NCBI GenBank assembly: GCA_965637545.1
Contig: OZ281494.1
Span: forward strand, 27,776,001 to 27,840,000
Source of the DNA: Phallusia mammillata
Lineage: Eukaryota
Direction: 5' to 3'
Length of the DNA: 64,000 bases
A program made the position numbers and the translations under genes. The notes beneath the pieces are model-generated. The model saw nothing but the letters and a program-made list of their open reading frames with translations, was not told the origin of the DNA and made no database searches. Shown one piece after another: positions 13,301 through 17,795 of the stretch; positions within the stretch are counted from its first letter, which is position 1; each line of letters begins with the position of its first letter.

Positions 13301-16300
13301 CAGTGAAGCATATCATGAAAAGTTAAAGCAAAACATGCACAAGCAAAAACAGGTTAACACTTCCACCACCAAATACCTACAGACATGATAAGGAAATTGA
13401 TGTAACACAGATTTGAGTAACACTGGCTAAAACTACAGGCTTTTTTTCTCAATTTTGAGTTACAATTTGATCTGTATCAGTAGACACCAACATCAGTTAA
13501 GTTCCTTTTTTAGGATTATACAAATACCACTCATTGAACACACAATATGAGTGGCACTATACCATATCTGCATCAACACTAGGTCGCTACAGATCCAAAA
13601 TTTAAAAAAGAGGAACCTGTAGCTTTGGTCAGTAACTCAGGTGTAAGGTGAGGTGAAGGTAGCAACAAAATGCATACAAGCAGAAAGAAAACATACCCAG
13701 GAGGAGCAATTTTAACTCCCGCCTTGCATCTTTTTTATGCCGGCGTAGTTCACGCTCGATTTGTCCATTAATTTTTTCTGCTTCTCGCTCTTCTTTGTTT
13801 TTGCAACAATTCCTAAATACCTTCAGCATATTTTTGACCTTGCATGCGCATGTGAAATCAGTGGAGGGTATTTTGCAAAGAGACAAACTGCGCTGCCGCT
13901 GCTGCGATGTCTTTGCCAAGGATGTAAACAAAAATCAAAACTTTAACCCATTTTAAACACAAGCTAGCACAAAAATAAATTGACAAGATTAGTTGCCAAT
14001 TCCGAGAAAAAGACAGACTCAGCATATTGTTGTACAACTGTCTGTTTGAAACTTGCTTTATATAAATAAGTATGCACAAAAACTTTTTATGATGTTACAC
14101 CACACCACTTCTGAAAAAGGAACTGTCAAAATGGAAAAAAAAAACTGTACCAGTCAGTTAAACACTAAAAAAACATCAATCTTACAAAACTAAAACTTTC
14201 AAATAAATTTGAGAATTAATATACAAGCCTAAAAATATGCAAACTAATTTAAACAGAGTGCTGGCATAAAGTGCAATAAGCATGCAAAACATAAACCACC
14301 CAGAACTAGGAAAGAAACAAACAAAAAGTCACCAACATTAGTACAAATCTAGCAAGCAGAGTTAATGCAAACTGTATTTCAATTTTGTCCAAAACATACC
14401 CAATAGGAGCAATTTTAGTTCTTTTTTGGCATCTTTCTTATGTCTTTTTAACTCCTTTTCAATTTGGAGATTTATATTCTCTGCTTCGATTTCGTCACGG
14501 GTTTTGCAACAATTACCCAAAATCGCAGCCATAACTGGCAAATTAATTTATTTTGATTTTACCGAGAAATAAAATACCGCATTTTCAACCTTTTTAATAA
14601 AATCTACACCTAAATTTAGAATTAAAACACAGTACAAAGACAAGTTAATAAAAGCATAAAAATATTAACCGACTTTTTATATGTTGACGAAAATGCTTCA
14701 TAGCCATTACAAAAATGTGTTCAAGCATTTCTACACAACCAAAAAAAGTTGCATATATATCGAGGAAACATTTCTTGATACAGTTTGTGTTAAAAAAATC
14801 TTCAAAAGATTTTTAAGATTTAGGCGGCAGTTTGTATTTACATAGTGTACTTTTTGGATGGACAGCCTTTTTCCAATGTAATAGATATGTCATATGTACT
14901 TGTAGTTTTTGGAAATATCACATGTTTTTATGTTCAATCTAGTACATGTAATATTTACAAATACAATTCAATTCTCGGTGTACATAGTTATGCATTTATT
15001 ATACTTTGATATTCTTGATCAAATGGGAAGTCGTTTATATTTAAATGCATACTGGAAGTATTTTTTTAGTTTTATACATTATTTCGGGGCAACAACATGT
15101 TTTTTTAATCATTTTCTGACCCCAAAAAGCATAAAACAAGACTGGTATGCCTATATGCAGCATTTTTTGCCATTTCTTTTCAGTTAACCGTTCTACTTAC
15201 AAATTGTTTTAACACATTACTTGGCAAATTGTGTCAATTAAATAGACCTTTCAAAGGCTTTGCAATACATCCTTGGTATAGTTCAAAATTTGCATTTAAA
15301 ATAGGCTTTTAAGCAGAAAATACAGCGACCCACATAAGCCAATTAATAAAAATGAGCAACACAATAAAAGTAAACCTGGGGTCTTTCAAATACTTAATCA
15401 CAAGATCTATAAACCTAATACATTACTTGTGGATGTTATAACTTCTGTTAAATCTGTTAACAGTTACAGTTACCACTTGCTTAGTAGTAAACACACTGAG
15501 CACCTTGGCACATTTCCATAAGGTAGCAACTTTTCTTAAACTGACAGAAGTATAAAAACGTTGTAAACTAAACCTAAATGTTTTAAACAAGTAAGGACAC
15601 AGTAGAGAAAAACTAAACCACAAGCAACTTAAAAAACACATATGTTGCACTAATCTGGTCCGAACTGTTTTGTTTCGCACACTATTACTGACAAGCCAAA
15701 GTGTAAAAAATGCAGCACTCAATTCGCGAGTGGCACATGGATACTGAAACGTGAATTTAGTCATTCGGAAGGAAGACCGTTCTAAAACACAACCCCTGCA
15801 TAAATTATAATTCGTTCTTGTCACGTTTAAGTTTATGTAACGCTTTGAAACTGTGCCCTTAAACGTAGAATCAAAATTCACAACCATCAAAACGCTGCGA
15901 AAACTTCTGTGCCAGTTCTGCTGCCGGGTGTGGTCCGGTGCATTGTGGGAAATTCTTAACGAAAGTTTTTTGGAATTTTACCGGGATTCGTCGAATTTAG
16001 TAACTCACTTCAGCTTACGCGATCTATCCGAACTTTTTAAGCCGCATTTTTATCTTCAAAGTATGTAGTTAACAAACTAATAAAAAAATAAAAACATTTT
16101 TTTTAACTTTTTTCATTTTGCATGGCGTATTTACCGTTGGTTTTAACAACAAACAAGGAAAAATTTGAGCAGAACCTATGCAGGAAATTACGTCTAGTAA
16201 AAACTTGCTGTAGTTAGACAGGAGTCTCTAAAGTATGTTTTTTGGACCGGATGCCACTGTCAAGCTTGACCATCTAGTCCTCGGTTTAAATATAGAACAG

Positions 16301-17795
16301 ATTCCGAAGATCAGGCTCGTCAAGCACAACAGGTAGAATAAACTTGCATGCCTTTCTTTAATAGTAAACTCCGAATCCAAGACATTTACCACAACCGTAT
16401 GTAAACATTTGTACGTAAATCTTTTAAATATTTTTCGCATATTGGGGAATTCCCCAAAATCTTTGAAAACCCCAGAAACTGATGACTAAAAACAATTGTT
16501 ATGAATATAAATTATTCTAATCCTTCTTTCAACAAAATGAAAAACATGCGAACAATAAAAGCCAACGCAAAACGAGTCATTTTTTACAGCCTAGGGCAGT
16601 ATTTTACGCCAAAAAATATTTAAAATTCGGTTGATGAGTAAAAATAATTTTATTCAGACACTTCCACATGCAGTAGACATTAGCAGCTGTCGTTAGTTCA
16701 ACTGCAGGTAAAGCGCCAATGCACTTAGCTTTTAACCGACCCAGCCTACACGGTTCATCTCAGCGCGTGTGGAAGACTCAGACACATGAAAAAGGAAGAA
16801 GTCGTCAAATAAATGACAAATGTGTGACATGCTGCGACGTGCGACTCTAGTTTGCTTGGAAATATAAATGGATTCTTGTATTAATGTGTTTAAGACACCT
16901 GTGTCAAAGTTACATTTTTACTTTCAATGCGAAAAAACAAACCTCAATCGTTGTAATGTTTTTGCTGCTTGGTGGGTTTTTTTTTATTATGTTTTTTTGT
17001 GATTGTGGTAGGCTGATTTTAATGATTATGGTTTTATTCTGGATTGCATCTTAATAACTAGGCCTACAAGGCTGGTGCACCAACCGCCTTTTCATATCGA
17101 AATATAATCTTCATTTTGCGTATGCAATATGGATTTCTGTCATCCATTTATTATTTTACTTCTTTCTTGGCAAGTATATTGTTTCGACAATATTAACCAA
17201 TGCATCAAACAACTTGGATCTGGATAAAATACGTAACCAAACGCAGCAGGAATAATGCCGAAAATGAGCTGTTCAATATATAGGCCTATATGTTTGTAAA
17301 ATGTCAGGTTTACCTTCATCAGCCAAATTGTTTTGAGGGGTTTTACACATAACTATTGTAGCGAAAGATTGAAACTAACAAAACGTAGAATATCGCGGGG
17401 CTTATTTCGTTAAAAGTCCTAAAAACTTCATTCCGACAAACACACTCACGGCAATATGGTATGGTCTTTGCAAACCAGACCCCAAATGTTTTGAATATGC
17501 CGGGCAACGGAATGTACCCAGTAGAATCAAGTTTACAAAAACCATTTAGCACAAAATCGCAAACGCATCAAAGATAAGAAACAGCTTTCTTATGTGTACT
17601 TTATTATAATTTTGAGAAAAAATAAGTTACCTATAAATGGCGCGAATTAATAATATTAAAAATACACTTACCAAGTAGTAACAGTTTCATTTCTCTCTTC
17701 TGCTTTTTTATTTGTTGCATAATAATGTCGTTAATTCGGTCATTTTCTCTCTTCGAAGCTAGTTCCTCGCTCGACAGGCAACAAGGTAATCCCAT
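4400..17795 (-). CDS. GNAQ: Guanine nucleotide-binding protein G(q) alpha subunit, 7 coding exons per isoform (about 357-360 aa)
   Basis: Shared exons 11595-11779 (185 nt), 10823-10983 (161), 8436-8564 (129), 7494-7623 (130), 6266-6419 (154), 4400-4590 (191). All introns are GT-AG and phase-consistent. Sizes match vertebrate GNAQ as I recall them (185/155/129/130/154/191). Motifs [36 protein letters not shown] and the Gq C-terminus NLKEYNLV are present. Three alternative first exons are listed separately. Confidence 0.97.
7283..7297. repeat. (TA)n microsatellite
   Basis: Pure TA run in a G-alpha-q intron. Confidence 0.8.
8927..9143. mobile_element. hAT (Charlie-like) MITE in a G-alpha-q intron
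   Basis: TIRs CAGTGGTTCTCAAAC / GTTTGAGAACCACTG. TSD TTACAGAG / TTATAGAG (7/8). Confidence 0.88.
13697..13829 (-). CDS. GNAQ: G-alpha-q alternative first coding exon, proximal copy
   Basis: 133 nt encoding [44 protein letters not shown]+G. Phase-1 donor G|GTATGT is in frame with exon 2. Confidence 0.9.
14400..14532 (-). CDS. GNAQ: G-alpha-q alternative first coding exon, middle copy
   Basis: 133 nt encoding [44 protein letters not shown]+G. Phase-1 donor G|GTATGT. Acceptor TTTGCCAG lies 2 nt before the ATG. Absent from the ORF track. Confidence 0.9.
16003..16018 (-). promoter_or_regulatory. Candidate splice donors of a non-coding leader exon for G-alpha-q
   Basis: GTAAGC (16018) and GTGAGT (16008) on the minus strand, in the CpG-rich zone upstream of the middle and proximal first exons. 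Confidence 0.3.
16442..16457. promoter_or_regulatory. Perfect 16-bp palindrome containing a kappaB (Rel) site GGGGAATTCCCC
   Basis: TTGGGGAATTCCCCAA read directly from the sequence. Confidence 0.4.
17672..17795 (-). CDS. GNAQ: G-alpha-q alternative first coding exon, distal copy
   Basis: 124 nt encoding [41 protein letters not shown]+G. Phase-1 donor G|GTAAGT. Has the CCLS.E motif of canonical Gq N-termini. Absent from the ORF track. Confidence 0.88.

Follow-up and report, generated by a model that had tools for sequence, protein, structure and literature searches.

The alpha-N helix decides the membrane position of a G-alpha subunit and its meeting with G-beta-gamma and with receptors. Vertebrates have four Gq-family genes and vary the Gq N-terminus by duplication of whole genes (Gq, 11, 14 and 15), whereas tunicates, the sister group of the vertebrates, have one Gq gene. 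In Drosophila, G-alpha-o has two 5′ coding exons. Here, a Gq gene of the ascidian Phallusia mammillata is described, in which the N-terminus is probably varied by alternative first coding exons. The gene lies in a stretch of 64,000 nt (contig OZ281494.1 of GenBank assembly GCA_965637545.1, positions 27,776,001 to 27,840,000 of the forward strand), hereafter called the window, and all positions are counted from its first letter. The contrast with the vertebrate gene duplication into Gq/11/14, already drawn in a first-pass annotation made from the letters alone, may be regarded as a fair analogy.

Duplications of single exons have been described for several G-alpha genes, namely GNAO exons 7/8, amphioxus preGNAQ exon 5, fish GNAQ/GNA11 exon 4 and urochordate preGNAI exon 5 (PMC5896119). 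As in the ascidian gene, a local duplication of one exon results in isoforms differing in one interaction surface; those exons, however, are internal or terminal and cis-spliced, whereas the ascidian case concerns exon 1, for which a 5′ end of its own, from a start site or a spliced-leader acceptor, is required. The XL exon of GNAS and GNAL is likewise an upstream alternative first coding exon replacing the alpha-N end while the rest is shared (PMC5896119), but it adds a long unrelated extension, whereas the ascidian alternatives are alpha-N paralogues of the same length, at least two of which are defined by trans-splicing. Compared with ascidian spliced-leader (SL) trans-splicing generally, the leader found here is identical and AG sites within the 5′ untranslated region (UTR), after U-rich sequence, serve as acceptors. 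Unlike the usual situation, two neighbouring paralogous coding first exons carry acceptors of their own, and acceptor use decides the N-terminus.

Structure of the gene

The Gq gene is located on the minus strand. Its core exons 2-7 span positions 4400-11779 and are preceded by three paralogous first coding exons, designated 1a, 1b and 1c (Table 1). Matches to Pfam PF00503 (G-alpha) above the cut-off were obtained from exons 2 and 7, and all G boxes were found: GTGESGKS at 11780 (GESGKS at 11774), DVGGQ at 7616, FLNKKD at 6341 and TCATDT at 4495. In tblastn searches with a vertebrate-type Gq representative, the last exon, which ends in ...ANLKEYNLV, showed 82% identity, and exons 5 and 6 showed 85-93%. 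The coding exons (n = 7; 133 or 124, 185, 161, 129, 130, 154 and 191 nt) are joined in frame at GT/AG sites, resulting in predicted proteins of 357 aa with 1a and of 360 aa with 1b or 1c. The G boxes, the LKEYNLV end, the seven coding exons and a CC doublet 31 residues before KLLLLG are all shared with vertebrate GNAQ/GNA11. The lengths of 185, 129, 130 and 154 nt match those of human GNAQ exons, exon 3 being 6 nt longer in the ascidian. Seven coding exons have been reported for preGNAQ (PMC5896119). The locus is a single Gq-class G-alpha gene with the seven-exon plan of vertebrate GNAQ.

Just one set of G-alpha core exons was present in the window, with one tblastn match per core exon and none between 1a and 1b; therefore, the three first exons cannot belong to three separate genes. 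In each of them the last base is the first of a split Gly codon (phase 1), which is completed by the exon 2 acceptor tttag/GA at 11779, and each carries the CC doublet at the spacing given above. When the 64-kb window was searched by tblastn with the three peptides, exactly three places were returned (E 1e-5 to 1e-27), with nothing else below E 0.1. Chance open reading frames (ORFs) as the source of the exons were ruled out by these E-values, as well as by there being exactly three copies.

Exons 1b and 1c share 29/44 residues and 85/133 nt (64%), and neither contains stops or frameshifts. DNA identity of 1a to the other copies amounts to ~45-50%. These comparisons, and the reading of the start codons, CC doublets, KLLLL ends and phase-1 GT donors on the minus strand, reproduce the first-pass description of three paralogous first exons, two of them a 133-nt pair. 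Because synonymous divergence (pS) between 1b and 1c is saturated at 0.89 while non-synonymous divergence (pN) is low at 0.23, both have long been maintained as coding sequence. Exon 1c is the conservative copy, with 69-80% identity to the proximal exons of other ascidians described below and a terminal branch of 0.05. Exon 1b is the diverged copy (67-74% identity; branch 0.39), and it is this form, not the conservative 1c, that was found in all four of the RNA runs placed.

Splicing and trans-splicing of exons 1b and 1c

Assembled Logan contigs of four RNA-type runs (X1, X5, X6 and X13), originating from four studies, were placed on positions 11727-17726. The joint 14400->11779, which reads CT..AC on the plus strand and thus GT..AG, was present in contigs of all four runs. 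The joint 13697->11779, also GT..AG, was present in contigs of X1 and X6 (two studies), and X13 additionally covers 13730-13965 without a joint. Both forms therefore occur in X1 and X6, whereas X5 contains 1b only. No other joints were found in the region and no contig carried two first exons in series, although contigs can miss rare forms. The first-pass prediction that duplicated first exons are alternatively spliced to a shared exon 2 is thus borne out for 1b and 1c, and the opposite case considered there, in which one exon only is ever joined to exon 2, is contradicted.

Contig ends of X1 and X6 that did not follow the genome were found at both first exons. After reverse complementation, those at 14611 read (AGTA)CGGG-ATTCTATTTGAATA followed by the genomic AG, and those at 13965 read AGTACGGG-ATTCTATTTGAATA followed by the genomic AG. 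The added sequence on the 1b and 1c mRNAs is the 16-nt ascidian spliced leader ATTCTATTTGAATAAG, which is not encoded at the locus (two studies) and which is given for Ciona in Table 1 of PMC1488885. Because the contig ends carry this leader at a genomic AG, the 1b and 1c mRNAs are both SL trans-spliced, at AG 14611-14610 and AG 13965-13964, respectively. We interpret the letters ahead of the leader as coming from the tail end of a template-switching oligo; in that case the leader would stand at the capped 5′ end. Trans-splicing of 1b and 1c had not been foreseen in the first-pass annotation.

The 5′ UTR of 1b contains a single short upstream ORF (uORF), MRYFISR, whereas that of 1c contains three upstream ATGs, of which the nearest one or two open an ORF that overlaps the start codon out of frame. 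Together with a predicted 1a leader that holds none, these differences suggest isoform-specific translational control. At position 14567, within the 7-codon uORF of 1b, mRNA contigs of X1, X5 and X13, not those of X6, have a 6-nt deletion relative to the window; this indel polymorphism affects a TATTT repeat and keeps the frame.

That the triplet stems from an assembly artefact, which the first-pass annotation had named and called unlikely, or from collapsed haplotypes was rejected on copy divergence and on the presence of both spliced forms in the same runs. The copies are just 64% (1b/1c) and ~45-50% (1a) identical in DNA, and 1b and 1c are found as distinct spliced mRNAs within single runs. 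Of the words sampled from the stretch, DNA runs contain a share of 0.91-1.00, though these runs are possibly the source of the assembly itself. The probability of such an artefact is practically nil.

Proposed arrangement and choice between 1b and 1c

The locus is best described, with good though not full confidence, as a single ascidian Gq gene with three alternative first coding exons that swap the alpha-N segment on a shared core. In short, the spliced leader is joined to 1b or 1c at its own AG, 77 and 134 nt upstream of the respective ATG, and the phase-1 donor of either exon is joined straight to exon 2, resulting in predicted 360-aa proteins that differ in residues 1-44 only. Exon 1a would be handled in the same way in some samples, giving a 357-aa product, and its use would depend on a promoter further upstream. 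The swapped segment would correspond to the alpha-N helix with the palmitoylatable CC doublet and a polybasic patch. The isoforms would share the catalytic core, the effector face and the receptor-binding C-terminus, and would be set apart by their membrane affinity or microlocalisation, and perhaps also by their contacts with G-beta-gamma or receptors.

The acceptor favoured by trans-splicing in Ciona is the first functional one that follows the transcription start, and Ciona outrons are short (median ~458 nt; PMC11155486). Given both properties, the simplest reading is that 1b and 1c each have a start site of their own: the choice between the exons would be set by transcription starting either upstream of 14611 or between 14400 and 13965. 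Alternatively, the choice could be post-transcriptional, with a single pre-mRNA whose start lies upstream of 1b (near 15896, for instance) and which receives the leader at 14611 or at 13965, so that alternative trans-splice sites rather than promoters are selected. Both mRNAs are indeed trans-spliced, the distance from the 1b donor to the 1c acceptor is just 435 nt, a tight space for a promoter of its own, and X1 and X6 contain both forms while X5 contains 1b only. Unspliced RNA of low depth, as expected of an outron, is also present upstream of 1b in two studies (15055-15896; contig depth 3-6, compared with 78-376 for mRNA). Against this, no contig connects 15055-15896 to 14611, and the acceptor preference and outron length in Ciona favour a separate start for 1c. 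A shared pre-mRNA is therefore held as a tentative alternative to separate start sites.

The RNA at 15055-15896 would represent either 1b/1c pre-mRNA, as untrimmed outron or promoter-proximal sequence, or a separate, small nested transcript. Within it, at 15423-15890 on the minus strand, lies an ORF of 155 aa (~154 codons when started at the ATG, 15887-15423), for which no Pfam match was obtained. A TATAAA motif is located ~20 nt before the contig end at 15055.

Use of exon 1a

A second run search was carried out with sampled words of 17560-17960. DNA runs held a share of 1.00 of these words, and X1 and X6, which express 1b and 1c, held 0.00. Intermediate shares were obtained for other RNA-type runs: 0.71 for X18, 0.63 for X19 and 0.32 for X20 (study P2), and 0.39 for X2 (study P1). 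For an exon extending from 17672 past 17960, the calculated share of 31-mers is 259/371 = 0.70, which X18 matches. The use of 1a thus looks sample-specific. Upstream of the coding part, a candidate acceptor preceded by a branch-like motif would delimit a 211-nt leader (Table 1) with 0 ATGs compared with 3.8 expected from the region (P ~0.011), and the start context, gcacaATGG, is strong. Because of the partial word shares in RNA-type runs, the ATG-free leader and the conservation in other ascidians described below, we infer that 1a is a real exon that is used in some samples.

Several observations weigh against a gene with three working first exons. Of the three isoforms predicted in the first-pass annotation, those with 1b (four studies) and 1c (two studies) were recovered as joints; no contig of the four runs reaches 17672-17726, and the joint 17672->11779 was not observed. 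Word shares, for their part, cannot prove splicing. All RNA evidence comes from assembled contigs, and the RNA nature of the runs was guessed; for X1, X5, X6 and X13 it is argued from the spliced leader and from intron removal. Among the distal exons, 1a has diverged most (terminal branch 2.1; pN to its orthologues 0.31-0.37), and because of this, relaxed constraint on 1a in this species is possible. In addition, the working acceptors of 1b and 1c lie between the 1a donor and exon 2 and could capture 1a transcripts unproductively; by translation of the sequence, 1a spliced into 14610 would meet a stop ~20 codons on. Protein output from 1c may also be low, given its upstream ATGs and the overlapping ORF.

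It follows from part of these points that only 1b and 1c might make protein here, 1a being a transcribed relic that is no longer productively spliced to exon 2. This would fit the lack of 1a coverage and of a 1a joint in four runs of four studies, a branch that is by far the longest of the distal class with non-synonymous divergence above that of the other distal exons, and acceptors at 14611 and 13965 that could capture the 1a donor and yield a stop. On the other hand, the 1a ORF is intact, its GTAAGT donor is perfect, its phase is conserved and its length of 124 nt is that of the distal exons in two relatives (L002 and L009). The ATG-free leader, a word share in RNA-type runs of exon rather than intron size and the strong purifying selection on the distal class in other species likewise speak for a functional exon. 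A relic is accordingly judged unlikely, and sample-specific use of 1a is preferred.

Table 1. Positions of the exons, leaders, acceptors and unspliced RNA of the Phallusia mammillata Gq gene in the window.
Feature	Position	Strand	Properties
Predicted 5′ leader of 1a	17796..18006	-	211 nt, no ATG; 5′ end likewise predicted
Candidate 1a acceptor	AG at 18008-18007	-	tttttttcag/G; tactaac branch-like motif upstream
Exon 1a (distal class), coding part	17672..17795	-	124 nt, 41 codons + 1 base; MGLPCC...KREMKLLLL; donor GTAAGT
Unspliced low-depth RNA contigs between 1a and 1b	15055..15896	.	X1 records 4, 5; X5 records 9, 10 (two studies)
5′ UTR of 1b	14533..14609	-	77 nt, 7-codon uORF; spliced-leader acceptor AG 14611-14610
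Exon 1b (proximal class, diverged copy), coding part	14400..14532	-	133 nt, 44 codons + 1 base; MAAILGNCC...KKELKLLLL; donor GTATGT
5′ UTR of 1c	13830..13963	-	134 nt, three upstream ATGs; spliced-leader acceptor AG 13965-13964
Exon 1c (proximal class, canonical copy), coding part	13697..13829	-	133 nt, 44 codons + 1 base; MLKVFRNCC...RRELKLLLL; donor GTATGT
Shared exon 2	11595..11779	-	185 nt, P-loop GTGESGKS; acceptor side of both RNA joints; Pfam G-alpha E 1.7e-18
Exon 3	10823..10983	-	161 nt; tblastn and splice sites
Exon 4	8436..8564	-	129 nt; tblastn and splice sites
Exon 5	7494..7623	-	130 nt, switch II; tblastn and splice sites
Exon 6	6266..6419	-	154 nt, FLNKKD; tblastn and splice sites
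Exon 7, coding part	4400..4590	-	191 nt including TGA; TCATDT ... LKEYNLV; Pfam G-alpha E 2.2e-13

Conservation in other ascidians

Searches with the exon 2 peptide resulted in exon-sized ORF fragments from tunicate-like genomic contigs in ENA long-read assemblies. Further relatives were obtained by ORF searches with 1c and with a distal-exon profile, and thirteen loci were fetched in all. A word-indexed protein search with the 1a ORF returned no candidate; further distal exons were found through a profile of four distal exons. The contigs of the relatives come from mixed long-read assemblies, and the pairs L007/L008 and L002/L009 may represent haplotypes or close relatives.

Every relative locus with exon 2 carries one proximal-class exon 0.6-3 kb upstream of it, and within the DNA examined no second, 1b-like proximal copy was found in these loci. 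The canonical proximal class carries RHK(K/R) towards its end. Proximal exons of other species measure 124 or 142 nt, compared with 133 nt for both 1b and 1c; this common length hints at a duplication inside the Phallusia lineage, which the 38-column tree described below cannot date. A distal-class exon was found upstream of the proximal exon and in the same orientation in five contigs, at distances of 3.15-14.5 kb (L002, 8.05 kb; L005, 5.9 kb; L009, 3.15 kb; L008/L010, 10.46 kb; L012, on the L001 contig, 14.5 kb). Distal exons have the form ...CC.S.E(E/D)...K(R/K).N.EIE.AI.EK....K.EMKLLLLG, with a length of 121-124 nt, phase 1 and a GT donor; the 124 nt of 1a are identical to the length in L002 and L009. 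Conserved features of the class are a short extension before the CC doublet and the end ...K(R/K)EMKLLLLG, with its K(R/K)EMK segment.

Further distal exons were found in P0163, P0164/L011 and P0165. That at L011:10025-10150 (MAICFMSSEERVQKRVNKEIERALRYKAQESKREKKLLLLG) has a single Cys instead of CC and ends in EKK instead of EMK, and neither a proximal exon nor a core exon was found within 10 kb downstream of it. In L003/L006/L013, no distal exon was present within 18.7 kb upstream of the proximal exon, an interval holding Pao retrotransposon ORFs; the distal exon of these loci is either lost or located further away.

Between L002 and L009, the distal exon shows 14 synonymous differences and 1 non-synonymous difference (pS 0.71, pN 0.011), while the flanking 300 nt are ~50% alike and thus unalignable. 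Because of this excess of synonymous changes between unalignable flanks, the distal class is regarded as established to be a protein-coding exon under strong purifying selection. The comparison of synonymous and non-synonymous change in other tunicates, proposed in the first-pass annotation as a check, thus came out in favour of the distal class.

A 38-column tree was built from the distal exons (n = 8, 1a among them), the proximal exons (n = 13, 1b and 1c among them) and outgroup Gq N-termini. All eight distal exons fall on one side of a 100/100 branch. The thirteen proximal exons form a 98/94 clade adjoining the vertebrate and invertebrate Gq N-termini, and the position of 1b inside this clade was not resolved. 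The branch parting the distal class from the proximal class and the outgroup Gq N-termini has a length of 1.12. Of the earlier claim of three tandem copies, the paralogy stands; a simple triplication does not agree with the tree, in which 1a falls into the old distal class and both 1b and 1c into the proximal one. From these sequence comparisons, the distal and proximal classes are old and ascidian-wide; the 1b/1c doublet was seen in this genome only.

When the distal profile was compared with solved N-termini, E-values of 1e-9 were obtained for G-alpha-11 and Gq, and of 1e-5 or weaker for Gz and Gi. A Gi-like origin of the MG exon was ruled out, since the profile matches Gq/11 about four orders of magnitude better than Gi/Gz. 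Divergence of the distal exons is concentrated next to KLLLLG, where 7-10/18 positions are common with outgroup Gq. For the same 18 positions, most proximal exons have 13-16/18 and 1b has 11-13/18 in common. The distal exon is thus a diverged Gq alpha-N, not a Gi-like one.

The depth of this split could also mean that a tandem paralogue of the Gq family (cf. GNAQ-GNA14 and GNA11-GNA15) was lost and that its first exon, left behind as 1a, was captured by the gene that survived. Vertebrate Gq-family genes stand in head-to-tail pairs, said to stem from tandem duplication (PMC5896119), and the branch of 1.12 separates the distal class deeply from all other Gq N-termini in the tree. However, the window has no further G-alpha core exon, either between 1a and 1b or at another place, and likewise no further one was found downstream of the distal exons in L002, L005, L009 and L012. 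In the human loci, the divergent partner is located downstream and not upstream. Finally, no tandem preGNAQ duplication before the vertebrates was found in PMC5896119. Capture from a lost paralogue is considered improbable, and the distal exon is regarded as an alternative first exon of the Gq gene itself.

Some properties of the contigs were recorded in addition. Two or three different tunicate Gq loci can occur within a single long-read 'metagenome' assembly, so that species counts are approximate. L007 and L008 come from the same ENA sample, and L002 (3x) and L005 (27x) share one sample. Near-identical Gq locus pairs look like haplotypes, and one low-coverage contig differs hardly at all from the main organism of a different sample.

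N-terminal residues and lipidation

Palmitoylation would be available to all three isoforms through the CC doublet, which is preceded by four residues in 1a and by seven in 1b and 1c. Lys and Arg together number 8 in 1a, 10 in 1b and 14 in 1c, with net charges of +2, +2 and +6, respectively. Gly2 is present in 1a and absent from 1b and 1c, and MGLPCCL fits the loose PROSITE pattern G-{EDRKHPFYW}-x(2)-[STAGCN]-{P}, as matched by eye. The effect of the polybasic patch differs within the Gq family, G-alpha-14 having nine basic residues and G-alpha-16 six (PMC8003949). Orthologous distal exons start with MVGA, MVGP, MMD/MD, MYDT, MDGG or MAI, and the MG start occurs in this species only. Because it is absent from the orthologues, the earlier suggestion of a myristoylatable MG form is weakened and does not hold as a property of the class; myristoylation of 1a would at best be a species-specific extra.

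Relation to earlier work and significance

The survey in PMC5896119, for which four urochordate genomes were annotated, makes no mention of alternative first exons in urochordate preGNAQ. In the literature searched, coverage of which was incomplete, no prior description of ascidian Gq N-terminal isoforms was found, nor any description of trans-splice acceptors defining alternative coding first exons for a G-alpha gene. Transcript models in the genome databases of well-studied ascidians may already contain these isoforms. What we rate as new is a duplication of G-alpha exon 1 that is conserved across ascidians, and trans-splice acceptors that define alternative coding first exons.

One gene with a conserved, interchangeable pair of alpha-N exons, three in this genome, constitutes a natural experiment in which alpha-N alone is changed on an identical core. 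Gene models that list a single Gq N-terminus are corrected, and the published survey of G-alpha exon duplications is extended. The locus also provides a clean example of spliced-leader acceptors defining alternative coding first exons, and this bears on whether trans-splicing diversifies proteomes. As a more speculative extension, about which we are doubtful, selection may have kept an ancient second alpha-N exon that yields a functionally distinct Gq, in parallel with the vertebrate split of Gq/11 and G14/15, with a third copy added here and with trans-splice-site choice on a shared pre-mRNA acting as the isoform switch.

Additional features

At the gathering threshold, Rfam cmscan returned no family anywhere in window positions 1-64000, including 39501-40167; no more permissive search was made. 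In the relatives, transposon ORFs (Pao, RVT_1 and DDE_Tnp_1_7) were located at L006:240-1367, L007:4125-5243, L010:1772-2458 and 5139-5348, and L013:10186-11313. In L006/L013 and L007 they sit no more than 10 kb upstream of the proximal exon, and in L010 upstream of the distal exon. Transposons between the first exons may explain part of the spread of these intervals, from 3 to >14 kb.

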